Assembly: GCA_965644265.1 (NCBI GenBank)
Contig: OZ286461.1
Span: 28,024,001-28,088,000, forward strand
Source of the DNA: Glycera tridactyla
Taxonomy: Eukaryota
Direction of reading: 5' to 3'
DNA length: 64,000 nt
The translations under genes and the position numbers were made by a program. Under the pieces are notes generated by a model. It was not told where the DNA came from, did not search any database, and worked only from the letters and a program-made list of their open reading frames with translations. Each line of letters begins with the position of its first letter. Position 1 is the first letter of the stretch. Positions 13,293 to 50,715 of this stretch are shown here, piece after piece.

Positions 13293-13396
13293 ATACACTG
13301 TTGAGCCAGCCCGACGTGGGTCTATAATATTTCTTCATCAATCGGGGCTGTCTAATAGTAGATAGCAATGACGATCAGGAGGAGAAGCGAGATCAC
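13293..13396 (+). pseudogene. Dead W5 copy (psi-2): TLLSQPDVGL*YFFINRGCLIVDSNDDQEEK
   Basis: Clear homology to W5c; in-frame TAA, no AG at acceptor position (ttg), no GT donor. Confidence 0.88.
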
Positions 13397-13499
13397 CCAC
13401 CGAACCTTTGTGGTATTGGCTGGTCATACCTTAATTACGAGATATTGGTCAGAAGGCAATCGAATGCAGCAGAGGTTATAACAGGCATACCAAGCAAAG

Positions 13500-14010
13500 T
13501 ACCGCACAATAACAGTTTGTGGTATTTGTATGATGACATCACAACCAAATGCATCAAATGATGTAGAGCGAATTGCTTGGACACTGCCTCACAATAACAG
13601 TTTGTGTTATTTGTATGATGACATCACAACCATATGCATCAAATGATGAGAACGAATTGCTTGGACACTACCTCCCAATAACATTTTGTGGTATTTGTAT
13701 GATGACATCACAATCGTATGCATCAAATGATGTAGAACGAATTGCTTGGACACCACCTCCTAATAACATTTTGTGGTATTTGTATGATGACATCACCACC
13801 GTATGCATCAAATGATGTCGAACGAATTGCTTGGAAACTACCTCCAACTAACAGCTTGTGGGATTTGTATGATGACATCACAATCGTATGCATCAAATGA
13901 TGTAGAACGAATTGCTTGGACACTACCTCCAAATAACATTTTGTGGTATTTGTATGATGACATCACCACCGTATGCATCAAATGATGTAGAACGAATTGC
14001 TTGGACATTG
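13500..14010. repeat. 84-85-bp tandem repeat x6
   Basis: Unit starts at 13508, 13593, 13677, 13762, 13846, 13932. Confidence 0.95.
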
Positions 14011-14742
14011 CTTACACATTATCACAATAATAGTGGACAACTGGTTCTTGAATACTGCTGACCAATCCCATCACCATCATCCTTGGTATTCTGTCATTCC
14101 TCAGCCTCTTCGATGACTTCCGACATCTCACACCCCACTGGATATCACTCATCCTCGACCTTTTATCGTGCCATCTTCTCCACCAATTGCAGGTGCCCCT
14201 CTCCATCGAGTACACCACCCCATTATTTACATATGCCAACCAGACTTATACTTTTATTGATATCTTCCTTTTTTTCCAGCCTCCCTGCATTTGTAGTCAG
14301 ATTGAAGGTATCACCTTCCCCTCCGAGTCAATAGTCCTACCATTTGCCTACGCATTTGCCTTGTGATCTGATTGATGATAGCCGTCTTTTCCAGCCTTCC
14401 CTGTCCCCAAATGTATTTCAGCATCTCGTGAATGTGGCCAACTATCCAGCTCAATGAAAGGACCCCCACCAAGACTCACATCAATGATATATGAAACACA
14501 AGACAGATTCAGCAACAAAAATTTTTTATGAGACTGCATACATGCAAGATCATCAATTATGTGATATTCGAAAAAAAAAAACAGATTCAACTCTGTATGC
14601 CTCACCATTAGGTTCCCTGGAAATTCACAATCGTACTCATTTTTGTGACATTCTGTCGAACCATATCTCATTGAGTGTGTGTACTGCGTGGTCCTGCCTC
14701 TACAAAAACAATTCCCTGACACTCTTATCATTTAACATTCAG

Positions 14743-14846
14743 AGAAACTCTTGGTCCCCATGGATCCGGGACTCTTCTTCTTCATCAACCAGGGCTGTCT
14801 GACAGTAGACAGTATTGACGATCAGGAGGAAATGTCAATTATGGAC
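14743..14846 (+). CDS. Mhc: Alternative exon W5d (EKLLVPMDPGLFFFINQGCLTVDSIDDQEEMSIMD)
   Basis: ttcAG / GTatgt, 104 nt, phase 1-0. Confidence 0.94.
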
Positions 14847-16337
14847 GTATGTATCGCAGTTGCGGGGTTTCCGTCACGTCACCAGACAACCTACCCCACA
14901 CTCAAAGATGCCCCCCCTAAAGCCCAAGCCCAAGCCCATGCCCCTAGAACGACCATCATCACTACACAGTTTGATAGCATGAAGTATCTTGGATTGCACT
15001 TGGAGATCTTGCGATCAAGCACCAACAGTCTTTTTTCTTTCCACCGCATCATCCGTCTCAAGTAGTCCCGTTATTCAGTAAACTTGTAGACCATCTCAGA
15101 TATAAAATAGCCCCTATTAAGCTGGCTCTATTTGGGCTAAGTCTGCCAAAAAAACTGGATAATGCCTGGTCGCAACTCACAAGCAATCCTTGTACCCCAA
15201 ATGACATTCCTTCTCTAGGAGGAGACTCCAATGAATCCATTTGAACCCTTTTTCTCGAATCTCTAGGTCACCTCTTGTGCCCCTTCATTCCCCTTGTAAT
15301 AATAGTTCATCTTACAACAGAAACGTGTTATAAATATTGTGCACAATCCACTTTTACATCTTTGTGCCCAATCTTATACCCATATCACCTGACCCCTTGA
15401 CTTCTGGTTGCCACACAAACATGACCCAATCACGTGAATGTTTGATGCCAATCCTCATGTTTTCTCTTCATTGATCCAAGAGTGGTAGATAACTCCCAAA
15501 CACTTCATCCTTCATACCATCTTCCCAACGGATCCCATATATACCAATCAACATCTCACCCACACTGCTAATCTCTATTCATCTTCTAGGACCTCCACCG
15601 TCACCTAAACCTGTCTCCAGATTTTTTAGATGTGTTTCCTCTTGCAGCGAACGGACGCAACTGCGCCTCTCTCCTGTATTCATTTTTCCAGCCTGAACTG
15701 AACTCCACCCCTTCACCGATGCCAGAGGATTCCTACTCGTGCCTGTACCGTTTCCTTTTACCAAGAACAACCCACACTCAACGAAGTAGTTTTTTTTGTA
15801 TCTTCTTCGTTGACAGACTTTGTATCACATCCAACCAATTCTTGCCCCTTATCTTACCCGTTTTTTCCCAAACCGATCGTCTGGAGCGATCAATTTTAAT
15901 CTGTACAATTCCATATGCCCTGAATCATCCTGCTGTTCATATTTCATGATGGCTGGTTGAAATTTGTGACTGAGGATTTTCACAGATGTTTACATATCAC
16001 GAATGGTCACAAGCAATAGCTTGTATCGCATGTTGTGCCCCATGCCTCTGGGTGACAAGCAACAACGTCATTTGAAATTTTTAACAATACAAATATGTCA
16101 ATACTGACTTTTTGCCTGGTTCACGCAATCAGTTCAGATGGAAATCCGATACCTCATTTCACAATATATTGTTTTCAACAACTGCATATTGACATTGGGC
16201 AATATTCTGCCTGGCTTGAAATACAAAGCTTGCTATGAATCATTGTGAATCAACGTCTGTGAGGAATCCTCCATCACTTTAGGAGCTTGTCTGGTCTCAT
16301 GTGACACATAGATAATCGTGTCCATGCTTTTGTTCAG

Positions 16338-16441
16338 AAAAAATTCTGATCGCAATGGATCCCGGACTGTATCACTTCATCAACCAAGGCTGTCTTGATG
16401 TCGACAGCATTGACGATAAGGAAGAGATGTCAATTATGGAC
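16338..16441 (+). CDS. Mhc: Alternative exon W5e (EKILIAMDPGLYHFINQGCLDVDSIDDKEEMSIMD)
   Basis: ttcAG / GTatgt, 104 nt, phase 1-0; missed by ORF track. Confidence 0.94.
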
Positions 16442-17507
16442 GTATGTATATCAGGTCAAAATTTGACATGAATCCCCACTCTGAGCAGCTTTGGGATCAC
16501 TCAGGGTGGGGATTCTAATCCTCATGCCACACTTGAATCAAAAACAGTTTCTATACTGCATGGAAATCCGATTTGCATTATTGCGAACTGGATATCCTTC
16601 CGCGGCCATCTTGTTGAGCTGCATCGACTGGTCCCACACACGATCTAACTTTTTGGTGTCGGTGCACCTGATCTATGGAGCCAGTCAAATTCAGACGCAT
16701 TGCATATTGTGCATAATAACCTACACTCCCATGTAAATATGGATACCTACTTGAGTGTGGCATAATTAGGAGGACCTGATGGGCAAGTTGAGTATCTGTA
16801 TAGCGTCTACTAACTCACTGGTATTCATCATCTGTGCACGAATAGCCCACGATATTCAAAATATTTTGGTGAATTATCCACAACAACTAAAACAGAAATC
16901 CACCAGATGTATTTCTGTCGATATGGAATCATGAGCGAAATAGTTCGATGATATTTCTGTAGAAATTTGATAAAAAATCAGCAAATTGAGTATCCTGGGT
17001 TTCCCACCTCAGTGCCTTCCACTCCTTTTTCAGATACATCTGATTTCCATATCCTGCATCTATTTTTAGTCTTTTCCAGCATTCGACCTCAAAAGCACCT
17101 TTCAGAAGGGTGCTTACATGCATAGCACACTTATCCCCACCATTCCATCCATTCCTTGTTTCAGGTTCTTGAAACATCCATTTTATCCTGTCCATCTACG
17201 TACACCTTACCTAAATATTACCTATTCCTTTTCAGGAATTCTGTGTGTATCACCACCATGCCTTATCTTGCATTTCATCTTATTATAGCCTCACCATATT
17301 ATTATATCCTTACCAGATTATTTCTATAGCATTTCAGTTAGCATGACCTAGCCTCTCCTATTGGATGTTCCTGTACCAATCCGCTGTCTGTATATCAATA
17401 AGTCACCACACAATTTCCAGGTTCTTTCTCCTGTGAATTGAATGTCGACTTGCGCCCGATCGTATATTCGCAATGATTCTCACTTATTTCCCACTACCTG
17501 TCTCCAG

Positions 17508-17611
17508 ACCAAATCCTTGTGCAGCCGGATCCTGGACTCTTTCACTTCATCAATCAGGGATGCTTAACTGTTGATGGTCTGGATGACCAAGAGGAATGTG
17601 AAATCATGCAC
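17508..17611 (+). CDS. Mhc: Alternative exon W5f (DQILVQPDPGLFHFINQGCLTVDGLDDQEECEIMH)
   Basis: tccAG / GTatgt, 104 nt, phase 1-0; missed by ORF track. Confidence 0.94.
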
Positions 17612-19349
17612 GTATGTAGACCGAACGTCCTGTCAGAAGATCAGATTTCATGCATGTATATCACAACCTGCCCGACTTTCATGTAAACGCAATGAGTGTA
17701 ATCAGAAGTAAATCCGATTTCGACCTGACTTAATGCTAACAATATTTATAGATTAGTCTTCGGATGATTGAAGAGACTGTGTCTTTCATTATCATCTCAT
17801 GAATGATCTGCTAATCGCTGAAGAGCCAAACCAGTCAAGCTAAAGTCACCGGGACACTGTATTGCTGCCATTGATTCATGCCACATACACAATGGTGAAG
17901 CAAGTCATCACTAGATCAACGTTTACTTGTGATAAACTACGATCTGGATACACTTTGAATACCATCCTCAAATATAGTACAAAGGAAATCAGAAGATTCC
18001 AATGTGTTATCAACCAAACTGAGGAGCAGTATTCCATTCAAATCAATGGTGCTCCTAGCAACTAGAAATTAGTCCCAAAGCTGTGATGAGGCATCATCCT
18101 CGGCAAGACAGATTTGCCAACATGGCGGTGCCCACATATTCGGCATTTATGAAGTAAAACTCCCTGGTGGTAATTGATACACTGGTGTGAATTTCTGCAG
18201 TCATTCATGTGTATATTAATTCCAGACCCTGGGTGGATTTGATGGTGTTCCCTGTGTTGAAGGGCGATAGTGTCCGTGTGACGACAATATATACCTTACC
18301 TGAACCTCGACAAAACAGATATACCCGATAGCACTTCAACTTCACATGTAGAACCCCGCCCTTATCTCCCATTTAACTTCTTCTCTTGCAGGACCTGTCA
18401 CCTCTTCCTCGTATACTTTCCGAATGATTCCCCATACATGAGATTACTACTCTCTTACAGACAGCAGTCTATTGCTACCTTGACCATCTTCCCCATACCA
18501 TCTCATCTTTCCATGTACACCTCATGTCTTCATCCTTCCATAAATAATAATATGCATGAATTAGTGATGTCATTATGGTTACGATGACGTCATTAATTTA
18601 GGCTCTTCATACTCTGTTGGACAGGGTAGTATCCTTGGAGCAAGTCTCTGTGCTCACCAACTTCCTGTTGGGGTTCTCTCTGAATTTGGTCACTCATAAA
18701 TTGACGTAAAGCTGGGATAGCAAGAGGCAATCCTACTCCATTCTAGTCACTACTTTAAAATACTCCCATTGCGAGAGTAACACTCCTCAGTGTGTTTGGA
18801 CGTGCAAATTCACTCCAGCGACACATGTGAAACATTGTTTCACATTGAGACTTGGAAATCGACGTAGATTTCGTTTGGCTCATAGACTTGCTCCAATCCC
18901 AACCCAAATCTACCTATTTTTGATCACACTTCACTCCTTACAGGTTTTCCACCGCGTGCCTCTCAGCCCATTCTCCAACATAGTGGATTTGACTCCCTCA
19001 CTTCCCCTCAATTATCATGAGGTAGCACCATGCACCATCCTAAGATGAACCTTTTCTCTCCTTATCACCATTTCAGCCAGCATGATTCTCCTTATTGATT
19101 GTTTGATTTGGATTTCCTCAGGTACACCAACTTGAAACCCGATTGTGTTTTTTCTGGTCCTGTATTCAACTGCCACCCGATTTGTCATTTCATGCTCCAA
19201 CTATTGTGACATGCTCATCACCCTCATACCCTTTTTTCTCCACCTCCACCTTTTTTTTATTTAGTATATGTATCAGTAGTATTGATCTGATCTGGTCCAT
19301 CTACATAGATGTACTATACTAATGTCTCCCATACATGACCTATCTCCAG

Positions 19350-19453
19350 AGAAAATGCTCATTGAGATGGATCCGGGTCTGTACCATTTCATCAACCAGG
19401 GTTGCTTGGGTGTTGATGGTATCGACGACCAGGAGGAGTGTCAAATCATGGAT
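19350..19453 (+). CDS. Mhc: Alternative exon W5g (EKMLIEMDPGLYHFINQGCLGVDGIDDQEECQIMD)
   Basis: tccAG / GTatgt, 104 nt, phase 1-0. Confidence 0.94.
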
Positions 19454-20265
19454 GTATGTACACTAAGGCCAAAATACTTTCCCGGGTATCAAACCATCTC
19501 GAAATTCTGTATATCCGAAATCGCATCTACTGAAGTCGCCTGAGTCTTCGCCACCTGGTGTTCTGATCCGACTCTAATCCCAGGTTCCATTGTTCACCGT
19601 CAGAGGCGCCAGTAGTGGTGTCCTCCTTACTCTGCGGCTCCGATAGAGTTCTTGAACATGAATATGTTTAGATTATTATGCATACTAAATTCTCTGCAAG
19701 CTATTCGACGTTGTTTGGTGATTTCAGTCGAAAAGCTTTGTATGATTTGTAAATATTATCGGTGCTGGTTTCGAAGGGATGTAACTCCATATATGTTCAC
19801 TTTGATGCGAAAAGCACCGAAACCCGGGAAAGTTCATTTTTTATATTCTCGACTATACCCGCTTATCTGCTATTGCAATGAGGAACAAAAGGCGGCAAGA
19901 ACGCATGAGCCTGTGCTTGATCTATGCTACACATTCTTCCATGCTTCCAGATGTTGAATGACATTCTCGGCAGCAACAATCCTCTCGATTCTCACGAATG
20001 CCTTAATTTTAAGTCAATCCTTGCAGGTACCACTATGCTAGTTCACACCTTTCATTTTTATGCACCGTCCCTGTTGACCATTCCCGAATATTGCCCTCTA
20101 TTATGGAATATCCCATGATTGTGCTCTGTCCTCATGTACCACCTGATGATTCTCACGGATGCTCATCCCTGTGCACCCACCCACCTTTTTCCTCTTCTCC
20201 ATTCCAACAACTCAGTGTTAATCATCCATACTATATTGACCAACCTCTACCGCACCTATCTCCAG

Positions 20266-20369
20266 AGAAAATGCTCGTGTCTATGGATCCTGGACTTTAC
20301 CACTTCATCAACCAGGGTTGCTTGGGTGTAGATGGTTTGGATGACCAGGAAGAGTGTGAAATCATGGAC
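20266..20369 (+). CDS. Mhc: Alternative exon W5h (EKMLVSMDPGLYHFINQGCLGVDGLDDQEECEIMD)
   Basis: tccAG / GTatgt, 104 nt, phase 1-0. Confidence 0.94.
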
Positions 20370-22041
20370 GTATGTACCCAACAACTCTCTTCCATACTTC
20401 TGAGGCTTCTCTCCTTCGATGGAATTCAATTCCTTCTCTCCGAGACGGAATACAGAATTCCGGATGGACGATAGCCAAAGGAGACAAGCGTGTTCTTAAT
20501 ATTTTTGTTCTCATCCTTCCTCTTTTCTTCCTCACCTGATTTGATAACCACATTCCAGTCCATCATTCCTTTAACCAAATGTGTGATGTTTTTCCAGTTT
20601 TTATATCCCAACTTCCACCCACGTGTTCTCCTACCTCTCGTCTCTTCTGAATCTTCCAACCTTGAAGGAGTTACTGATATGTGTGTGTTCTCTTTCAGAC
20701 CTTAGGTATTTTCACCACGAACCCTTCGGTGTAGGACAACCGACCCCCTTCCTTCACCCAATTGTGGTTTCACCTCCCTGAATTCCCTCTCCTCTCTCCT
20801 TACTCTCACAGTGTGGTTTGAGAGCAGCCTCCAAACTCTCTCATGAATAATTCGTGTAGATTTTACCATGTGATCCTATATTAATCTTTCCATACTCATA
20901 CATACAATTCAACTTACTACCATGCTAACAAAACCATAGTTGTGGGTAGCGATACCAGTACCTACCCTATTGAAATCAAAGTACATATGACATTAGATTT
21001 GATAGTTCTGGTTACTGCCCTCACTCACTTTGATCATACTAGACGGGCGTGAGATGGTGAAATGTGTCTGGAAAGATTATTATCTCTTTGTCTCATTTGA
21101 CTTATGAAATACTACCTGTGATGTAACCGATGTGTGATAATCCAGAATGTAGCATCATAGCAATCGTAGTCATTATGTCAGGATTTGTGAAGTCAGCAGA
21201 GTGAAATTGTCTAGATAAGTAGAGATACGTGTACGTAGAATGAAATCTCACTAACTTGTATTGTTCATTGCACGTATCTGTCAAAAACAGCAGAAAATTG
21301 AGAAAATACCGAAAAATAGTCTTCGGTGACTTTGAGACCCAATAAGCTCTTCGTTATGGCCTTTTTACCAGATCTAAGAAGTAAATCAACAATAATGAAA
21401 TTGGAGCTTCGTATTTGGGTCTCTGACGATCGCGATATATGCTTACATAGACGGCGACAATATGGATGACACTGTTCCAGAAAAACCACTCAAAAGTGGT
21501 TTTATTATTCTACAAAGTCATAATGAAATTAGGGCGTCGCGGCATTATGCCGAGGGGATAATATTCTTCGCGAGCACCATTATTTCGTGTTCAACATTGG
21601 TGCAAGCCAACCCGAGCAAAAACACTACTCGCCTTTGCCCCATGCCCATTCATCCCCCATTCACTCAACAACCGACCTTTACCACCATCCCTTCCCGCAA
21701 CTATTTAACTATATCTTCCAATCACCCAAGCACATTTTTGCGAGGTTTCCATCTGTGAGGTAGGTACTCATGATCACGAAATGGCAGTCCCTTGATTGGG
21801 GGCAATATGTCCGCGGTATATTTCCTGGAGTCACCACCAGAATATAGTATTGATAACAGGATCAAGATCCTATTACACCAGTGCCTATTCCCTGATTTAT
21901 TTCGACACAATCGGCGGATATTTTCCATTCGCTGCTTCTCCACGCCCCCGTGCATGCCAAGGGTGAGCCACTTCGTATGTGGCGAAACCTACCCCACCTC
22001 CCTCTAATCCCGTTGTGTCTCTACCTTCATCCTCCTAACAG

Positions 22042-22145
22042 AAAAGATTCTCTGCGCACCCGACCCAAGTCTCTTTCACCAAATCAATCAAGGTGTACTT
22101 GTTGCCGATGGAATCGACGATCCCATGGAGATGAGAATTGCCGAT
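22042..22145 (+). CDS. Mhc: Alternative exon W5i (EKILCAPDPSLFHQINQGVLVADGIDDPMEMRIAD), most divergent
   Basis: aacAG / GTaggt, 104 nt, phase 1-0; missed by ORF track. Confidence 0.92.
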
Positions 22146-39413: not shown

Positions 39414-39504
39414 AAAGGACCAGGAAATCAACAACCTGAACGGCAAGTTGGAGGAGGAACAGAACCTCGTTGCTCAGCTCCAGAAGAAGATCAAGGAACT
39501 GACC
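39414..39504 (+). CDS. Mhc: Exon W16 (KKDQEINNLNGKLEEEQNLVAQLQKKIKELT)
   Basis: tgcAG / GTgagt, 91 nt, phase 2-0; missed by ORF track. Confidence 0.96.
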
Positions 39505-39705
39505 GTGAGTATCTGTCTCAATATAGCACCAGTCATAATCAAATGCTGCTTCTCTTGCTTAGCTATAATTAACTGATTATCACTCAGCTTGATGCATATT
39601 TGCGCAATATCTTGTTGGCATTTCAGAAGATAAACTGGAATTCCTCAACATTTTGAAATATTCCTCACAGGGAAGACATCACTGCATCATAACCTGTGGT
39701 AGGAA

Positions 39706-39739
<34 letters not shown>

Positions 39740-42560
39740 CTCATTTATGCCCAATATATGGCCTCTTCAAGTGGGGCCTTCCTTCAGATTTGCTATTACT
39801 AATCTCCAAACAAGCCAGAAATGGTGGCCAATGGATGTACTTGATGTCCAGTTGGCACCCCTGGTTGCCTGCTTGTTATAGCTATATCATGCTTGTTATC
39901 GCTGATACCTATCAGGCTTTAATGCCATGGCAAATTGCTGGTTGCTTGGTTGTTTGATATATCATGAATACCAAATGGGGTATATTGAAACGCCCATGAA
40001 TTCGGATATCATGGTTTATAATTGATGTTTAAGTCAATATCTGAAGAATCTTTAAAGGCGCATACAATTCCTTCTCTCGGAGAAGCATATATTGATTGTT
40101 TTTGTAGATTTAGTGGCAATGGTATAGAATAGAACACGAACATATGCACACGAACGTATTTTTTAGTATGTTTATTGCTCTTGTACTCTTGTGAATCATT
40201 TAAAACTTAACAGTTGGTGCAAGTCGGAAACTAATATCCATGGAAAATTTCGATGAAATAGGAACTGGGAAGAATGGGTGAGATGTGAAATATCGAAACC
40301 GGAAGCATTGAGATTTTACGAGGCCGAAGTGGTATATGGTGATTCGATAACCAGGGATTCTTGCATTTATACCGCAGATTCAGAGCCTAAAATCAAAACC
40401 TTCTGAAAGTATCCTTAGGGGATATTGTTCCTATATCACACAACTTCATATCCCATGGATTCTACTATATCCGTGGTATGGGGGGAATAATCCCCAATCA
40501 GTCCATCACGGAAGATGTTAATTCACACCACGGCCTACATACATTTTACCTGTTGGTTTGCGGCCCCAATCATCTCACATACCTGGATTGATCCGTGGGA
40601 TGGCTACAGAGGATGCAGGGTGGATGGGGATGGATGAGGGCCCGCTGCTGCTGCTCTATATCTCGCCTGTAGCCCAGGTGAGATGTTGGCCCAGCTTTCT
40701 CAGGTGAGAATCGGCAATTCAGAGGTCAGGAGAGGTCACGGCGGGCCAGGAGCTACTCAATCAAAATCCCCCGCACTGCCAGAGCGGAATGTCTTCGTCG
40801 GAACTAGTACTTTCTTGTTCCGAAGTTCAAATGCCGGATACCACGGAATCCACCGAACAAGTCGAATATGACCAATAAGATGATTAATCCCTTCATCAGA
40901 AGATGATCAGACTCCTACATGGGACATCATAATTCTATCTGCATTTCCATCAGTTTTAGTTGAGATTTCCCAGTTTTGATGTATCCTGCGGATTTGGTCA
41001 CTTCGGCGAGTACCACTGAGCTATATTTAGGTCTAACCACAGAAAGCTGACTCAACACCCGAGGCCCAGGTTGAATCATCGGCCATGAAGGTTGATGTGC
41101 TGCTATCTGTTAGATGTCATGCGGGATGAAATATTTATGTTTACCGCTAACCACCCCATGCGGCTCATCCAGAACATCATGGATGTATACAACGGGTACT
41201 TCACTGTATCTGTATATCTACATGCAGCCTACCTTAGATAAATGGGCCTTGAGTACTCAAGTAGACGAGAGCTCAAGTACACGCACCCCCNNNNNNNNNN
41301 NNNNNNNNNNNNNNNNNNNNNNNNNNNNNNNNNNNNNNNNNNNNNNNNNNNNNNNNNNNNNNNNNNNNNNNNNNNNNNNNNNNNNNNNNNNNNNNNNNNN
41401 NNNNNNNNNNNNNNNNNNNNNNNNNNNNNNNNNNNNNNNNNNNNNNNNNNNNNNNNNNNNNNNNNNNNNNNTTTCACTCGGACTTGCACTCAACAAGACT
41501 CATGCTACGTACAAGTGCCTTTAGCACAACGCACAAGTGCAGAATCATAGACCATACTGAAATCTAGCCNNNNNNNNNNNNNNNNNNNNNNNNNNNNNNN
41601 NNNNNNNNNNNNNNNNNNNNNNNNNNNNNNNNNNNNNNNNNNNNNNNNNNNNNNNNNNNNNNNNNNNNNNNNNNNNNNNNNNNNNNNNNNNNNNNNNNNN
41701 NNNNNNNNNNNNNNNNNNNNNNAAACATGAATGCNNNNNNNNNNNNNNNNNNNNNNNNNNNNNNNNNNNNNNNNNNNNNNNNNNNNNNNNNNNNNNNNNN
41801 NNNNNNNNNNNNNNNNNNNNNNNNNNNNNNNNNNNNNNNNNNNNNNNNNNNNNNNNNNNNNNNNNNNNNNNNNNNNNNNNNNNNNNNNNNNNNNNNNNNN
41901 NNNNNNNNNNNNNNNNNNNNNNNNNNNNNNNNNNNNNNNNNNNTAATGTTTCCATGAATGTGCCAGAATTGACTGGCATATTTCCAGATGAATAGAAAAT
42001 TGGACAGAATAGATAGAGAAAAGACACACAGACCATACCATAAGATAGACCGGGAAGCCGTTCCCCAGATATACACTAGCAATTAGATGTTGGCGCCGAA
42101 ATCAGCGAGGAAATCCAATGTTTGTATATTTAGTTGTTGCAAATTACGTGCATTCAAGCAGTGGGCGGTGGCGTTCTCAAGGTCAAAGAAAACCTCTGGG
42201 CACTTAACTGGTTGATATATCAGCCCACTCCTAAAATCCAAGGCCCAAGCACACATGAAACTGTCAAGTTCATTTGGCGCTGAGCAAGTTTGATGCCTGC
42301 TTTTTATCAGGCGAACAGACCAAAAACACAAGCAAACAGCAGGGCCGTCCATCTTCCAATATTCAGCCAGAAAAAATGCGCTGTCCGACCTACGGTTGGA
42401 TTTATGCCTCAGACTCTTCCTCTCAACAAAACAGTTGATCTACAACATTGGAGTCTAACTGACATTCGAAGCATGCTGATCAGTTAAAAGTGAAAGCTGC
42501 TGGGTAGACAGTTGGTGCTGACCTTTAGAGCGGGGGTATTGTTGATTAGTTAGCTTTTTA

Positions 42561-42690
42561 ATTGGTCGGTAAACGGATTGGCAACGTCGGTGCCATCAGC
42601 AATATTCTCTGTATGAGATCTAGGCCAACTAGCCCCCGCCATATATGGCGTCTGCGATTACCCGAGTAGGCTAGGGGGTGGGCTGTTTAC
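42561..42690 (+). promoter_or_regulatory. Candidate internal muscle promoter: two ATTGG (reverse CCAAT), GC box, perfect CArG CCATATATGG (42639..42648)
   Basis: Motif cluster about 550 nt upstream of the ATG of exon R1; each motif alone is short enough to occur by chance. Confidence 0.55.
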
Positions 42691-43193
42691 CTGCCAGTAG
42701 CGGCCGGGGTTGGTACGTGAGGTTGGGCTTGCACTAGCCCACCCGAGCCAGCTACCCCCACACACATACCCCCCCTCTCAACACACACTGCCAATTCCAA
42801 GTACCTGGTGCATCGCAGACAGGCTCGCAGACTGGCATCTCTTACGCATGCGTGGAATGCTGGCCAGGGAGATATTTACTTATCCACGATGTACTGAGCG
42901 AGCTGAGTTTGCGATTCTTCCTGCTCGGAGTTTGTCATCATTTGAGTCCCGTCGGCCAAGCCTGCTGCATTCTCTGGTGGCCCTTGCCAGCTCATACCTC
43001 CTAGGATACTACTTCACTTCGACTACTGGGACACCTTTCGCTTCCACTACTCCTATGAAGTGTCTCTTCTCAACTCTTTCGTGAGCACTCCATACTACTT
43101 ACCGTCCCTGGGATAGGTTGTGGATAGTCTCTGTGGACTACTAGTAACACTTGGACTAGTTACTCTTGGGTTGACGGGCCACCGGATTTTAAA

Positions 43194-43955
43194 ATGGCTG
43201 ATGAAGAGAGTGCTACGCCTTCGGTAGAGCCAGTTGCACCACCAGCTGAAGCTGAACCGGCTGCTCCACCAAAGGAAAAGAAAAAGAAAAAGAAGAAGGA
43301 TAAACACAGTGAGTCTGAATCGGAATCCGCTCCAGCGACTGTCACACCAACAGTTAGTGAGCCACCTGCGCCTGCGACAGCAGCCCCAGTTGTTGAGGAA
43401 GCAGCACCAGCACCAGAGCCAGCAGCAGCAGCACCAGAAGCGGCAGCACCACAAGTGTCTGTCTCACAAGATCCGCCCTCTATCAATGTGACATGTGAAC
43501 CACAAGTGGAGACCAAAGTCCCCGAACAGGGTGGCCATGGGTCACCTCCTCCAACAAGCACCTATACCAGTGACACTCCTACCAGCAAAGTTGATGACGA
43601 GTTTATGGACTCCTTTCGTAGCTCCTCGGCTAAGTACGTTTACTCAGAGGAGAAGACCTCTACCAAAGCAAAATCAAAATATGACACGGAGGAGGATGCA
43701 CACCATGTTTTTGACCGATACTCAAAGCGGGACCCGTTCACGACGGAAGCGGATATTGAATATACTTCACGGCTGATTCATACGGCTTTAGGGGACCTAC
43801 GCTCAGGGGAAGCCCGTTTGATCAACCACCCAATTTTGGAGAAGAACCCACCGGAACCCATAATGAATCCTAAACTCCGGGCCGGTAGTCGGCGTGTGAT
43901 GAGGGCAGGCTACGATCTCGGCTTCACTCAACCTGGCCTCAAGGCATTATATGAT
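43194..43955 (+). CDS. Exon R1: unique 254-aa N-terminus of a headless rod isoform (catchin/myorod/MRP-like)
   Basis: aaaATGG start, 762-nt open frame, GAT|GTAGGC donor in phase 0 matching the phase-0 acceptor of W17; no myosin homology. Confidence 0.85.
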
Positions 43956-44274
43956 GTAGGCATCGCCATACATGGCTTACTCTCTTTAAATAAGATCGTT
44001 CACTTCTCGAAATCTTGCAAATCCTGGTATACTCGATAATTCTCCAGGCTTTGCAAGCTCAACCAATGACCCTGTCTCATCAATCAAGCAAATGGTAATC
44101 TCGACAGTATTCACTCATTCCAACCAGTCTCTTTTATGTCCAAATCTTCCATGGATATAAGCACCAGTTGTAAGGTTTTTCATGGATTATTTCAGCACTC
44201 GATTGTGTCCAGTTGTTGATGAATATGTGCAGGAGTATTTGGGCTGACCGGATGTTATTTGTCTTGACTTGCAG

Positions 44275-44331
44275 GCCCGTATTGAGGAGCTCGAGGAGGA
44301 ACTCGAAGCCGAGCGTGCTGCCCGTTCCAAG
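44275..44331 (+). CDS. Mhc: Exon W17 (ARIEELEEELEAERAARSK)
   Basis: tgcAG / GTaaga, 57 nt, phase 0-0. Confidence 0.96.
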
Positions 44332-45478
44332 GTAAGAATAACTCATATCAATGGCATCGAGAGATGGCCTTCTGTGTGTTTAAATGATTGCGAAGGTAGC
44401 TTGAATCAATGTGATTCATAGAGATTAATCCAGCACTAGAAAAGGGAAATGGTTGTGAAATCGTAGAAGTAAGGGTAGCGATAAACGTTGAAGGCCGAGG
44501 TAATGGTGGGGACAATGGTATTTCTAGGATTAAGAGGGTTAATCCTGTTGTAAATCCCAATGAATTATATGAAGCACCATCTACCAAATATACAAGCTTC
44601 CCTGGAGATCCATGGGAGTATCTGTAGCTGGGGGAGAACCCTCCTAGTTTGAAAGGCGGAACAGCTGAGTGAACTCAATCTCTTTAAACGGCAGGCATTC
44701 AATCCTGTCTGACAGATGAAAAAAAGAAAAAGAAGAAGGTACAGGTAGAAGAGCAGGTCTTGCTGACGTTAGCGATTTCTTCCATCATTTCGAGCATCTC
44801 TAGGGTATGCCCCCTCCCCTCCATCTTCAACCCATCTCTTGGACTGGTATCAAGTAGCACTGATAAGCTCCAGCTGTGAGGATGATTACCAGGACCCATC
44901 TGTCAGCTACACATCCTACTTGGATCGCTGTACCCGGCTAATGCACCCCAACTACATCAATAAACGGTGCTTGTGGGATTACATTTTATATCCTCTAAAA
45001 TCCCCTGCTGGCTAATAAACATTGTACAGCTGTAGTCTTCATCTCATGAGCTGTAGAAACCACAGGCATCCTCCAATATTCTGAAGATGCTCTGAATTTT
45101 GTATTGATTGAAAATTCCTAACGGTAATTTTCAATTCCCATGATGGTATACATAGAAGAAACATAATCTACTACTTGCAGCAAACAAAATTCTTTTCAAG
45201 ATCAATAGAGAATATTCTAGCAGCTGTTGATATTTCTCACACCATCTTACTGTGTGAGCTACAAAAATTGGGTGGAACTTTCAATCTGGAATTTCAAATG
45301 ATCACTTCAGTGAATGCAGACAGTATTGACTTTTGGCTTATGAGTCAGCGAATGTTTGTACACAGGGGTTTACCTGATGAGCGAGGGGGCTTTCCAATTG
45401 ATTCTTCTCAATGATATTGTATCCAGCATTCAAGTGTCAAACTCTGCAGGTGAGCACATCTTGATCCTTCTTCGGCAG

Positions 45479-45565
45479 GTTGAGAAGCAGCGTGCTGAGT
45501 TGAGCCGCGAACTCGAGGAGCTCTCAGAGCGTCTGGATGAGGCTGGTGGTGCCACAGCTGCCCAG
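45479..45565 (+). CDS. Mhc: Exon W18 ([29 protein letters not shown])
   Basis: gcAG / GTaaga, 87 nt, phase 0-0. Confidence 0.97.
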
Positions 45566-46242
45566 GTAAGAGAATACCATCATCCTCTCATCTCTTCATA
45601 TAAACAAAATTTAAAAAAGTAACTTCAGTTAACAGCTGGTGGGAGTACCGCATCCATCCGAAATTGTAAGTGACTCCACTCAGCAATCATAAAACCTTCA
45701 GACCTACTCATTCTGTTTTTTCGGCTTCGATATAGAAGGTCGAGATCTTCATATTGCACTCCTAGCTGTGTGATATAAACGTGAGAATATATAGTTGTTC
45801 ACTTGTCTATAATGCTCTTCATAGATGGTTGATAACAGAGAGAGAGCTCAATTTCTGGATATCCCATCACAAAGCCTGGAGAGACATGTGAGCGAGCTGG
45901 GAACATATTGCTCTTCACATATGGGAATAATACAAACATTGGACTCATATAGGGGTTCACTTTCTCGATAAAGCAGTTAGGTGCTGGGAGTGGGACAAAT
46001 GAGCTTAATAGAAACGCTGTGATTATACAGTTGTTAAATTTCTCGGTAATGCATTCTCAGATAGGTCAGAAACAAAAGCTGAGAATATAACATATAATTT
46101 TCAAATTTCTCGGTATTTCACTATGCATATGGTAACAACACCAAGACTGAGAATATCAGACTGAGAATATCATCAAATTTTACGCCATTGTACTATACAG
46201 TATCTGCAGGAAACTGAGCAACTGTCTGTCTCCTGCTTGTAG

Positions 46243-46409
46243 CTTGACATCAACAAGAAGCGCGAGGCTGAGGTACAGAAGCTCCGCCGTGACCTCGAGG
46301 AATCTCAGGTTCAGTCTGAACAACAGATCGCCTCCATCAAGAAGAAGCAGCAGGATGCTGTCAACGAGCTCTCAGACCAGCTCGACAACCTCTCCAAGGT
46401 TAAGGCCAA
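46243..46409 (+). CDS. Mhc: Exon W19 (LDINKKREAE...LSKVKAK)
   Basis: tgtAG / GTaagt, 167 nt, phase 0-2. Confidence 0.97.
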
Positions 46410-46429
46410 GTAAGTCCGCCTCCTCACCT

Positions 46430-46829
46430 CATAGAGCAAGTTGAGGGACAGCAGTTCACCTTGTGGTAAACCTTAGCCACGATTCAATTCTTACCACATA
46501 GTGCAAGTTGGGGGACAGCAGTCCTCCTTGTGGTAAACCTTAGCCACGATTCAATTCTTACCACATAGAGCAAGTTGGGGGACAGCAGTTCACCTTGTGG
46601 TATACCTTAGCCATGATTCAATTCTTACCACATAGAGCAAGTTGGGGGACAGCAGTTGACCTTGTGGTAAACCTTAGCCAATATTCAATGCATACCACAA
46701 AGAGCAAGTTGGGGGACAGCAGTTCACCTTGTGGTGAACCTTAGCCATGATTCAATTCTTACCACATAGAGCAAGATGGGGGACAGCAGTCCGACCTTGT
46801 GGTATACCTTAGCCATGACTCAATTCTTA
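46430..46829. repeat. 67-bp tandem repeat x6 starting 20 nt after the W19 donor
   Basis: Unit starts 46430, 46497, 46564, 46631, 46698, 46765. Confidence 0.95.
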
Positions 46830-47721
46830 TATGCTATGCCTCGATTATTATTCAGCCTTCCATATTCGACCATCACCATGACGGATAATAGTAGCATTAA
46901 TCTATCAGTTTTTCGAACATGAAGTCGATAGGCATGAGCTTTACAAAGATTCTTTTCTTATCGGACGAAAGATAAAAGAAAATGATGCTCTTCGATAGAC
47001 GTCTTGGCAACTTGGGACCAAGCACAAACCAATCTCATAAGCATAAAATATACAATCATCAATGATAGATTGGAGGGATTCAGCCACCTTCACCCATCAG
47101 TGGTAAGGAAATGGTCACAGTTATAAAGATTCAGCAATGATCATCACATGATTGTCGCCATTCTCTGTGGGGACATACAGCGATTCTATTGTGACAAAGC
47201 TGAAATAGTGAAGCAATATCGATATTGTTGCCTCCCTACAATATTCATAGAAATTCTCAATTGAATAGTGGTCACACGATCCCAAAAATCGATGAAGAGA
47301 TTCAGTTTTGAAGAGCTAATATGTATTGACTTGTATGGTTTAATTGTCTTCATTTGCAGATGTGCATTGTTGATGTGCATGCAGCATATATTTAAGTTTA
47401 TGTTAGTGATGTGGATATGTCGCGAATGTATTTGGATTGAATGAGTGCATGACTAACAGAACAACTTATGGTCACTAGTTACTGTAATTCACAATAAAAC
47501 AGGTGGGCGAAGTAGTTGTTCTGGTAGTCAAAAGTTGGTATGAATCTATATGTGAGCATGCTATCGTTGAGTTACCAGTTGAACCTTCTCTCTGAGCGAA
47601 GGGGAAGCAGCCCTACTAGGTGGTAATCCAAACCAGGGATAATCTCTCTCAGCATCAGTCATGATGGGTTTATCAAAAGGGAGCTGAGAACAGGGGGTTC
47701 AACTTGAACTTGAACTTGCAG

Positions 47722-47800
47722 GATTGAGAAGGAGAAGAGCCATTTGAAGTCCGAATGCGAGGACCTCCACTCCCAGGTTGAGCACGTAACAAAGGCCAAG
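47722..47800 (+). CDS. Mhc: Alternative hinge exon W20a (IEKEKSHLKSECEDLHSQVEHVTKAK)
   Basis: tgcAG / GTaaac, 79 nt, phase 2-0. Confidence 0.94.
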
Positions 47801-48772
47801 GTAAACAGGTTACCCCTTAGCATTGGCATGGAAACAAGAGTCTGGTGCTGCCTCAACTCATCACAACCTACCGACTACATCCGACCTGTCGAGATGCAAT
47901 CATCATCACTTGCCGTTCTTTTGAGATTTCTTTCCTACAACTCTTTCCAATCCTTTGCCTCAACAACACGTGCTTTTCCATCACACCGAATCTTGATGCA
48001 ACAGAAAACAGAAGATAAACAAAAGAAGAATTGAATAAACATTTGTCAATGTTTATCACATGCGAAGACTATTCGCTTTTTATGAATGTCGGATTTGGAA
48101 AAAATTATCATTAACATCCGATATAGATGAACATGCATCAGTGAATCTCACTGACATCAGGCATTTCCAAGTATCAATCATGGCAGAAAAAAGTGTCATA
48201 TGCAGAAATAATACCAATGGGATATTCCCATGACAATACAGTGTACCACAGAAAAGTTGAGCTTTTCTGACTCTAATCCAGAGTAAACCTGTCGGAACAT
48301 ATATGTTGGAAGACCATTAATTTACTCTGTCAGTGGATCGCTCTGCCCTGAACCGGTTACTAGTGGTAATCACAACAATTTGACATACTGTAGACACAAT
48401 GAAGGCATCTCTCTGAGAGCGAGAAGACTTGTTCTACTCTACTCACCACTTCATATAGCTCATTGGAGCTGGAAGAATTACATACTCCTCGGTGTCTGGA
48501 TAGGAAAAGATGGAAAAGCACTGGTGTGTGATCGAGGGTCCCCACATCCCATTCTTACAAAACAGGTTGCTGTGATGACGTGGTGCCGTGGCTGGTAGTT
48601 GCAGTGTAGAGCGAGTATAAGCTGGTGTTCTCCTCGCCGTGCCTCCTTTATTATTTTTTGCCAGTGTGATGTTTCATTTTCTCTCTGATATCATCATCCA
48701 TGATTGGTACCCGTTTGTGTCTGCATGCCCCGTCTCTTATGGTGTGCTGTGATTGATTTGACGTCGTTGCAG

Positions 48773-48851
48773 AGTTGAGAAGGAAAAGGCAACGTACAAG
48801 GCTGATTTTGAGGATCTCCAGCACCAACTGGAACATGTGGAGAAAAGCCGG
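48773..48851 (+). CDS. Mhc: Alternative hinge exon W20b (VEKEKATYKADFEDLQHQLEHVEKSR)
   Basis: tgcAG / GTatgc, 79 nt, phase 2-0; paralog of W20a. Confidence 0.9.
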
Positions 48852-50715
48852 GTATGCATGGCAGATGGTGGTGTATTTAAATCACTTCAGATATCTGTAT
48901 CACCGTGGTTATACCCCTGAAAATGATATCAATATTAATGCCTTTATTCGCAGAATCCTCTGCAGATTGGCTTCAAACTTGTATTCTTTCGTTTGAAAAT
49001 AAAGTTATTTACATTTACATTTAAACTTTGCATACGGTCACGTCCCACCCATGTGATAGAGAATGCAATTATGTCAAGAGACATCATGGCGAAGAATAAT
49101 ACTTCTCTGTGATTGATAATAAAACAGCCTTAGTCGATATGATCCTGATGAAAATAATTCTTCAGAGGGATACCATATCTTGCTGAATGCATGATACCCT
49201 ATTTACCACGAATTGCTACAGAAATATATTTCTTTCTAGCCACTAGTCTTGCCATAGTCACTCTTCTTGCCCTCGCATGAGTCGAACTGTACATGCGTGG
49301 TGTGCATCCTCTCGCACAAACACACGCACAAACACACGCTCCACAGAGTGGACAAAGAGTCGACACTGTTACAATCTCATCAGAAAATGGCACAACGATT
49401 CATACTCTGCTTTCACATAAATGAAAGGAATTCTAGATAGAATTTCGACCCTGCACATTTTGTTTCTTACCAGGGGTGTAACCACATCCAGGGAACCGAT
49501 TCAATTCTCCACAATGACATTACAATGAATCCATCTCTATTGTCAAAAATATACGGTGAATCGATGCATTCCTGTGTTGATGGCCGACATCGTAATAGGA
49601 ATCCGACAGAATATAACTAAAATAGACATAAAACGACGTTGGACAGGTCAGGATTAAAGTTGCAGCAGAAAGAAAAATCACAGAATAGATTTCATTCAAC
49701 CAGTGTTCAGTTTAACCCGGCGCACTTTTTGCCGGAATATGGCTACTAGTTCTATTTATATTGAAATATGACTGACTGGTGAAATAGAATAATTGACAAG
49801 CCTAATTATCAAGCACATGACATCCAGTGAATGTACACATTCGGCATATTTGGCATTCTCAAGTTTACATGCAACCTTAATCTGCTTCCATATACATATG
49901 CAACCCATATTTGATTGAAAAAAAACAGGTCATTCGGCCAATTCGGCAATTCGATAAGTTCAGCGGCACTCCAATCCTCTTTTCCGATCGCGTGAAATTC
50001 ATTGAAAACAATGTCTTGTCGATCTTTGTTTTTTTTTGCTGATCTGTGTACGTAGTCTTATAGCTTTTATGGTTTAAGACTTGATTTCCACTTCATGTAG
50101 TGTACTATATGCATTTATTTTTATTTCTGTAAGAGATCTATATAATGGAGCTAAGCAGATTTGCATTATTCATTTAGCTTCCCGTCTGTGTCCTACGTAG
50201 TTGGCATCATAAGTAGAGTGTGCATGAGTATGACCAGAATGACTAGATGACTAGCTGACAGCAAACTACGAACTTCATCTGTTGATTACAATCAATCAAT
50301 CACGATTAGCATTGCAGTTTACTGAGAGAGCCACTCTGTCACTACACCCTCTCAACAAATGCCATAATTCTGCTTCCAAAGATATGTATCTATTGAAATT
50401 TTTATTGTTTGCATATAGAAAGCTCTCTTCTGAATAGAAACCACCAAACGCTGTCCTAAATGGATATTCAAATATTTGGTGGCCTAGCTGTGCCTCTCGC
50501 AAATCATTGTTCTTTTCTCATCAAAGTCTTACCAGACTTGCACTCTTGTTCAAAAAGTTGGACTGAAATTGTAGACATCTTGTATGAAAGAATGGTATAA
50601 TGAGATAGCTTTGGTCGATACGACATTGTTCAGGTTTGACAGAAAAGTGATATTAGAAAATACTTGTGGTCTTGGTTCCAACCAAATAGTTGACACTATT
50701 GTTTTCTCTTTCTAG

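Follow-up and report, generated by a model that had tools for sequence, protein, structure and literature searches.

The question raised by this locus is whether a long open reading frame (ORF) inside an intron of a muscle myosin heavy chain gene opens a second, headless product of that gene and, if so, of which kind. Catchin, also called myorod, was reportedly described from Mytilus galloprovincialis and Argopecten irradians by Yamada et al. in 2000, and the Drosophila myosin rod protein (MRP) is said to go back to Standiford et al. in 1997. We consider it highly probable that this ORF opens, as first coding exon, a second transcription unit nested within the myosin gene, with a headless product orthologous to mollusc catchin/myorod. 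A headless catchin-type protein is of a kind already known; what is new here is its predicted occurrence in what is probably a new phylum and its longer, presumably differently regulated N-terminus.

Results

A single muscle myosin heavy chain gene lies on the plus strand of the window, i.e., the whole stretch of 64,000 nucleotides that was analysed. Motor exons, with arrays of alternative exons among them, extend up to about 36 kb, and rod exons follow from about 36.4 kb; positions 9236-22145 correspond to the Drosophila exon 7 region. Two rod ORFs of the gene matched Pfam Myosin_tail_1, including the shared exon 50716-51511. The upstream constitutive rod (S2) exon at 39414-39504 (+), read from sequence and translation, ends in ...LQKKIKELT with a phase 0 donor, GTGAGT, at 39505 and is joined to 44275 in full-length myosin splicing. 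Its last codon (39502-39504) completes the ...KIKELT that abuts ARIEELEEE in full-length myosin; the relative at L004 differs slightly here, with ...KIKELQ. Because this is the preceding rod exon, the ORF lies in a 4,770-nt (4.77 kb) host intron of the full-length gene (39505-44274, +), which carries it as an alternative exon 319 nt 5' of the ARIEELEEE exon. Three runs of N in this intron (41291-41471, 41570-41722 and 41735-41943), 1.25-1.9 kb upstream of the ATG, could conceal an element of the promoter or a leader exon without coding sequence.

The ORF runs on the plus strand from an ATG at 43194 to a stop at 44037-44039, with 254 codons (43194-43955) preceding a GT donor and 27 beyond it. 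Codon 254, GAT (Asp), has its last base at 43955, and the six bases after it are GTAGGC, giving the phase 0 donor GAT/GTAGGC (a slash marks the splice junction). The acceptor ...cttgacttgcag/GCCCGTATTGAGGAG at 44274/44275, which reads ...ttgcag/GCCCGTATTGAGGAG at the junction itself, opens, also in phase 0, the exon ARIEELEEELEAERAARSK that encodes ARIEELEEE from 44275. A 319-nt intron (43956-44274, +) separates the unique exon from the first of the shared rod exons, and the introns of relatives at this place are short too (approximately 60-500 nt). The ten shared rod exons downstream (44275-57967, +), which encode coiled coil and tailpiece, were rebuilt using tblastn with a full-length relative together with splice-site phases. 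Exons 1-5 lie at 44275-44331, 45479-45565, 46243-46409, 47722-47800 and 50716-51511, and exons 6-10 at 52106-52346, 55232-55643, 56192-56473, 56985-57185 and 57797-57958 (or up to the stop at 57965-57967), all on the plus strand. They total 2484 nt, or 828 codons, with two further residues (VN-stop) if the last donor at 57959 is unused. Unique exon and rod exons together form one open frame with a sole, terminal stop, coding for 1082-1084 aa of about 122 kDa with a pI of 5.2. Thus the initial annotation, which had described 254 codons with a KEKKKKKKKDK patch and a composition that our analysis recovers, spliced in phase to ARIEELEEE and followed by 828 residues (830 with the VN read-through), was right on these points. 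An extra terminal exon at about 62488-62571 (MSVFTGVKLKSS...SQN-stop), weakly like the tailpiece of relatives' headless isoforms and probably a chance likeness, was rejected because its tblastn E value is 2.4 and it is out of frame with the phase 0 donor at 57959. Capitella has been reported with three alternative C-terminal exons.

The unique exon falls into two parts. Residues 1-180 (43194-43733, +) are predicted to be disordered and comprise, in order, a Met-Ala-Asp start, an acidic Ala/Pro/Glu leader, the K7 patch, a second Ala/Pro/Glu spacer and a Ser/Thr/Asp-rich stretch (residues 91-180). The A/P/E-rich residues 1-26 have a net charge of -6, the KEKKKKKKKDK patch occupies residues 27-37, and residues 1-26 and 38-90 consist of 27-30% alanine, 21-27% proline and 15-19% glutamate. 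Past the start, residues 1-180 could not be aligned with relatives (alignment A1). An Ala/Pro/Glu-rich leader is also found in the relatives P0010, P0020 and P0061, and the poly-Lys patch in this protein only, among the relatives compared; the long acidic leader, rich in Pro and Ala and bearing the K7 patch, is specific to this lineage. Residues 181-254 (43734-43955, +), of ordinary complexity, form a juxta-rod module conserved in the catchin family, with the pattern D.EYTSRL ... HPIL ... NP.L..GSRRVMR.GYDLGF..PGLKALYD. The family-invariant residues M1, N218, S232 and G243 are kept here, as are the nearly invariant H212, R233, V235, G239, L249 and Y253. AlphaFold2, run with the 26-row alignment A1, gave a mean pLDDT of 55 and a pTM of 0.20, with no secondary structure in residues 1-180 (pLDDT approximately 45-58) and, at modest confidence (pLDDT approximately 65-71), five short helices at 185-198, 204-210, 213-217, 230-241 and 247-253, the last of which is predicted to continue into the coiled coil. 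A Pfam scan of the 254 aa returned no family, and the best of their ESM Atlas look-alikes scored a meaningless 0.51.

Searching 1.84 billion (1.84e9) cluster representatives with phmmer at a threshold of E<=1e-3 yielded 25 relatives, of which the best three (1.2e-14, 6.1e-14 and 3.1e-11) also pass E<=1e-10. The matches are 90-253 aa long, and all 25 alignments stop at query residue 254. All genomic relatives read ...G[YF]D[LM]G[FI]..P.L[KR]..[YF][DE], then Val (GTN), then mutually unrelated residues. The GTN codon after the conserved end and the unrelated tails indicate that these are ORF calls on genomic DNA that run across a conserved splice donor. The majority of full-length relatives begin with Met-Ala-Asp or Met-Ser-Asp, and their unique domain measures 125-226 residues. 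Judged by these similarities, the ORF is a conserved exon rather than a chance ORF. A profile search with the module alignment A2 gave 14 strong matches, none of them mollusc-like. With the 254 aa, a word-indexed homology search returned 8000 candidates and no significant one, probably because low-complexity words swamp it, and a search of papers for the module motifs found no mention of them.

The genomic position of the exon is shared as well. A homologous ORF lies just 5' of an ARIEELEEE-type exon on six other genomic contigs, the second exon being probable in three of these (L009, L010 and L011), in which a 33-aa ORF situated approximately 60 nt past the homologous ORF is probably the ARIEELEEE-type exon. 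On L002, L003 and L004 an ARIEELEEE or QRIEELEEE exon follows approximately 120-500 nt 3' of the homologous ORF, and Myosin_tail ORFs occur nearby on the same strand, on each contig downstream of the homologous ORF and on L003 and L004 upstream of it as well; in L004 an exon ending ...KRKIKELQ lies upstream of the catchin-type ORF.

Spliced products of this arrangement exist in relatives. The 90% cluster of P0009 contains P0033, a protein of 1028 aa from a 3.6-kb RNA-seq contig, and a region search with P0033 found only four more full-length isoforms, P0034-P0037 (990-1021 aa). All five come from other organisms, lie on mRNA-like contigs of 3.1-3.9 kb, and read from the unique N-terminus through ...MYD/[AQT]RIKELEEELE... 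into the rod and on through its C-terminus. Five 5'UTRs of 103-263 nt, from the P0033, P0034 and P0035 contigs, contain in-frame stops, and myosin head or S2 coding sequence is absent from them. Taken together, these spliced isoforms and 5'UTR stops show that at least five organisms make headless mRNAs with precisely this junction. The same 3.9-kb headless mRNA encoding P0034, with an AATAAA near its 3' end, was present in three JGI samples (L005, L006 and L007; 3300036414, 3300036111 and 3300036452), which suggests that this transcript is abundant in some host-associated or environmental metatranscriptome. JGI labels the P0034 protein as a 'chromosome segregation ATPase'.

We then compared the host exon with the published mollusc exons. 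Predictions of the catchin exon exist for Mhc2 of Crassostrea, Mhc1 of Aplysia and of Biomphalaria, and Mhc6 of Lottia, and Figure S3 of that study prints six exons, those of Argopecten, Mytilus, Crassostrea, Aplysia, Biomphalaria and Lottia, and shows their junction as ...PGLK.LLE/ARIEELEEELEAER (Kollmar and Hatje, 2014; PMC3912159). The host junction reads ...PGLKALYD/ARIEELEEELEAER. In both, the unique exon lies in a myosin heavy chain gene intron directly 5' of the exon starting ARIEELEEELEAER, its N-terminal part is of low complexity and Ser/Thr/Pro-rich, and the junction lies approximately 830 residues from the C-terminus (828, or 830 with the read-through, in the host; 830 as published). 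Like the mollusc exons, the host exon has HP.L, ...EP, [LI].A.S[KR][KR][VI].R...DL and PGLK in its last ~70 residues, and the shared module can be written ...HP.L...[LI]S..S[KR]..[ILM]R...DL...PGLK.L.[ED]/ARIEELEEE. For a column test, residue sets were taken from the last 28 columns of the six printed exons, and all six frames of the window were scanned. The best site coincides exactly with codons 227-254, matching 15 of the 25 constrained columns, whereas the runner-up among approximately 128,000 positions matched 11. Relatives scored 10-18 on the same test, except P0002 and P0003, which scored 6 because a one-residue insertion shifts their register; P0061 (...SRRSKKVIRE...APGLKLLFE) has an intermediate look. 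The catchin-type junction asserted in the initial annotation is therefore upheld by the match of the module to published mollusc catchin exons and by the placement of the best six-frame site. From the printed alignment and the column-match count, we read the host exon as an orthologue of the catchin/myorod exon.

The two are far from identical. The unique part has 254 aa in the host versus 156 aa in molluscs (approximately 100 longer), and the K7 patch and two Ala/Pro/Glu spacers of the host have no equivalent in the six printed mollusc exons. The host has GYDLGF where molluscs have T-S-D-L-A/G, its exon ends in ...LYD instead of ...LLE, and identity with Mytilus amounts to only about 12 of the final 28 residues. 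Thr141 of Mytilus (of 156; RDT*SDL), 15 residues before the exon end, is the published myosin light chain kinase (MLCK) site; its column holds Gly239 in the host, which lacks the phosphosite. Of the relatives recovered, at least 90% have glycine in this column, and only P0005 and P0022 have threonine. We conclude that the host exon belongs to a sub-family marked by GYDLGF/GFDLGI and devoid of the Mytilus phosphosite.

An exon may be conserved in a family and yet idle in one of its members. That the exon is no longer used in the host species, as a silent relic or with marginal expression, has in our estimate a small but real chance of being true. It would fit with the donor GTAGGC, which is of moderate strength and short of perfect consensus, and with the missing Mytilus phosphosite; against it, all 254 codons are open, the invariant and nearly invariant family residues are retained, the splice phase is intact and relatives express the isoform. 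We infer from conservation that exon 43194-43955 is used in the host animal, and the conserved Met-Ala-Asp together with an upstream in-frame stop indicates, by sequence logic only, that it has its own start in the host gene.

Two other arrangements of the same ORF are far less probable. Since the frame stays open for 27 codons beyond the proposed donor, it could be read as an independent intronless gene of 281 aa nested in the intron and ending at the stop at 44039. We think this very improbable, given that similarity to all 25 relatives ends exactly at residue 254, that the tails past the GTN codon are mutually unrelated and that transcripts of five relatives are spliced at this point into the rod. 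There is equally little to be said for an internal cassette exon of full-length myosin, placed between ...KIKELT and ARIEELEEE with no start of its own. The phases would allow it, as the upstream exon ends in phase 0, but the closest in-frame stop 5' of the ATG, at 43125, leaves just 66 nt for an acceptor and the Met-Ala-Asp start is conserved. In addition, the mRNAs of relatives measure merely 3.1-3.9 kb, the five 5'UTRs (of three proteins) have stops in place of head or S2 coding sequence, and a stretch of approximately 250 disordered residues would interrupt the coiled coil of S2.

Like the host protein as we read it, Drosophila MRP is a headless product of a muscle myosin gene from an internal start, and it is a thick-filament component. 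However, MRP begins with the first exon past the neck and retains the rod in full, approximately 260 residues more than a catchin-type junction leaves, its N-terminus is an exon extension with no separate exon, and MRP N-termini are unconserved even among flies, between close species of Diptera, in contrast to the long unique catchin exon, which is conserved (PMC3912159). The host junction lies approximately 260 residues deeper in the rod, at ARIEELEEE. Because the junctions differ and MRP N-termini are unconserved, any likeness of the host exon to MRP is compositional only. An MRP-type rod protein in place of a catchin-type one is scarcely credible, the Ala/Pro/Lys-rich leader said in the initial annotation to resemble MRP being outweighed by the lack of conservation within Diptera (PMC3912159), the junction at ARIEELEEE and the conservation of the exon across many taxa. 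Of the proposed headless hybrid of about 1080-1145 aa, the headless rod isoform thus stands, with its catchin-type junction, a length of 1082-1084 aa and spliced transcripts in five relatives, and the MRP half finds no support, as MRP begins about 260 residues further N-terminal with N-termini that differ from fly to fly (PMC3912159).

Discussion

Returning to the nested catchin-type unit, transcription would most likely be driven by an internal promoter within the intron that precedes the ARIEELEEE exon and begin a short way 5' of 43194, possibly with a further non-coding leader exon. Translation would begin at the ATG at 43194, and the 254-codon exon would be joined (43955/44275) to the last ten rod exons, yielding a headless product of approximately 1082-1084 aa and 122 kDa. 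By extension from the mollusc protein, its 828-residue coiled coil, the same as that of myosin, would dimerise and co-assemble with myosin on paramyosin-cored thick filaments, and the N-terminus would project from the filament surface in place of heads. The projecting part would then consist of approximately 180 disordered residues and a helical module of approximately 70 residues abutting the rod. In Mytilus, the module carries an MLCK/twitchin-type phosphosite and binds actin and myosin. By analogy, the conserved rod-adjacent module is likely to be the functional part. As the Mytilus threonine is a glycine here, regulation, if any, needs other sites, e.g., the invariant Ser232 in RAGS*RR. 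It is tempting to speculate that the K7 patch and the Ala/Pro spacer reach acidic actin surfaces.

The presumed internal promoter and 5'UTR (42600-43193, +) are marked, as weak evidence, by a GC-rich start and a CArG box. The GC content is 0.58 at 42600-42900 compared with 0.41 across the window, and one perfect CArG (SRF-type) box, CCATATATGG, lies at 42639-42648, at the start of the GC-rich stretch and 555 nt 5' of the ATG. The number of CArG boxes in the window is at the level of chance (5 versus 4.7 expected), MEF2 motifs show no excess over chance, and the CpG observed/expected ratio of the presumed promoter region is unraised. Scans of the intron for tRNA and Rfam families gave no match.

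An inverted repeat of 51-52 nt flanks the presumed internal promoter and the unique exon. Its arm A (40231-40282, +) pairs with arm B (44110-44161, +), which is located within the small intron at a distance of 113 nt upstream of the ARIEELEEE acceptor. RNAduplex gave a nearly continuous pairing of the arms at -45.0 kcal/mol, compared with -16.9 +/- 3.4 kcal/mol for shuffles (best of 500, -29.9; z of approximately -8), and the ungapped pairing score of 29.5 was equalled by none of 100 shuffles. The repeat was found once in the window. In a pre-mRNA from the far-upstream promoter, pairing of the arms would enclose the internal promoter in a loop together with the unique exon and its donor; internally started transcripts would be devoid of arm A, and the competition of two donors for one acceptor would be solved in this way. 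No counterpart of the stem was seen in five related loci, so that it is possibly lineage-specific or a remnant, and we rate a function for it as rather doubtful.

With motor exons nearest to those of Capitella, the host is probably an annelid, other than Capitella itself, rather than a bivalve; the initial annotation had called the protein notable should its host be no bivalve. Among the entries of Dataset S1 that were compared (PMC3912159), the exon YNTFEQ...ACIELIE is identical to that of Capitella teleta Mhc1, with 3-4 differences from leech and oyster, and LQASKEPLV and a 24-residue stretch are common to the window and Capitella only. Over the last 56 motor residues, the window differs from these entries at 6 positions for Capitella, 7 for Helobdella and 10 for Crassostrea. 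The same study analysed Capitella and Helobdella and reported the catchin exon for molluscs only; Capitella alone was reported with more than two cluster-9 variants (PMC3912159). Papers on catch muscle treat myorod/catchin as confined to the catch muscle of molluscs, bivalves for the most part, and consider it among the candidates for the catch linkage (PMC4410989, PMC12040844). Among the matches listed, all open-access papers with 'catchin' as a protein concern molluscs, with no annelid report (the subscription literature lies outside this search).

Two known systems are instructive here. The rod-only gene Mhc8 of Lottia gigantea begins at the rod position of catchin; unlike the host unit, it is a separate gene and has no long unique N-terminal exon (PMC3912159). 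The host arrangement also has a parallel outside the myosin genes. Telokin, or kinase-related protein, arises from an internal, intronic promoter of the smooth-muscle MLCK gene and binds the myosin filament. Being identical to the C-terminal portion of a larger protein of the contractile apparatus, it follows the same genetic logic as the host unit, from an unrelated gene and fold and without a unique conserved exon of such kind.

An intact orthologous exon in a probable annelid, together with at least 25 divergent relatives, which are more like the host exon than like those of molluscs, and the expression of five headless isoforms, suggests that catchin is wider and older than its mollusc record. 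Catchin would then be a general myosin partner on paramyosin-rich thick filaments and no catch-specific invention. A bolder scenario, which we put forward tentatively and with more doubt than confidence, is that catchin is old in molluscs and annelids, and perhaps in more spiralians, with the ~70-residue module conserved and the leader free to vary; that in this animal the Lys patch and spacer tether thick to thin filaments; and that the 52-nt stem (40231-40282 with 44110-44161) hides the donor in full-length pre-mRNA. The comparison also offers a handle on what matters in the protein, the ~70-residue module and Ser232 being conserved and Thr141 not. Finally, gene models of such loci would be corrected, as prokaryote-style or naive annotation detaches the exon as a 'hypothetical protein'.
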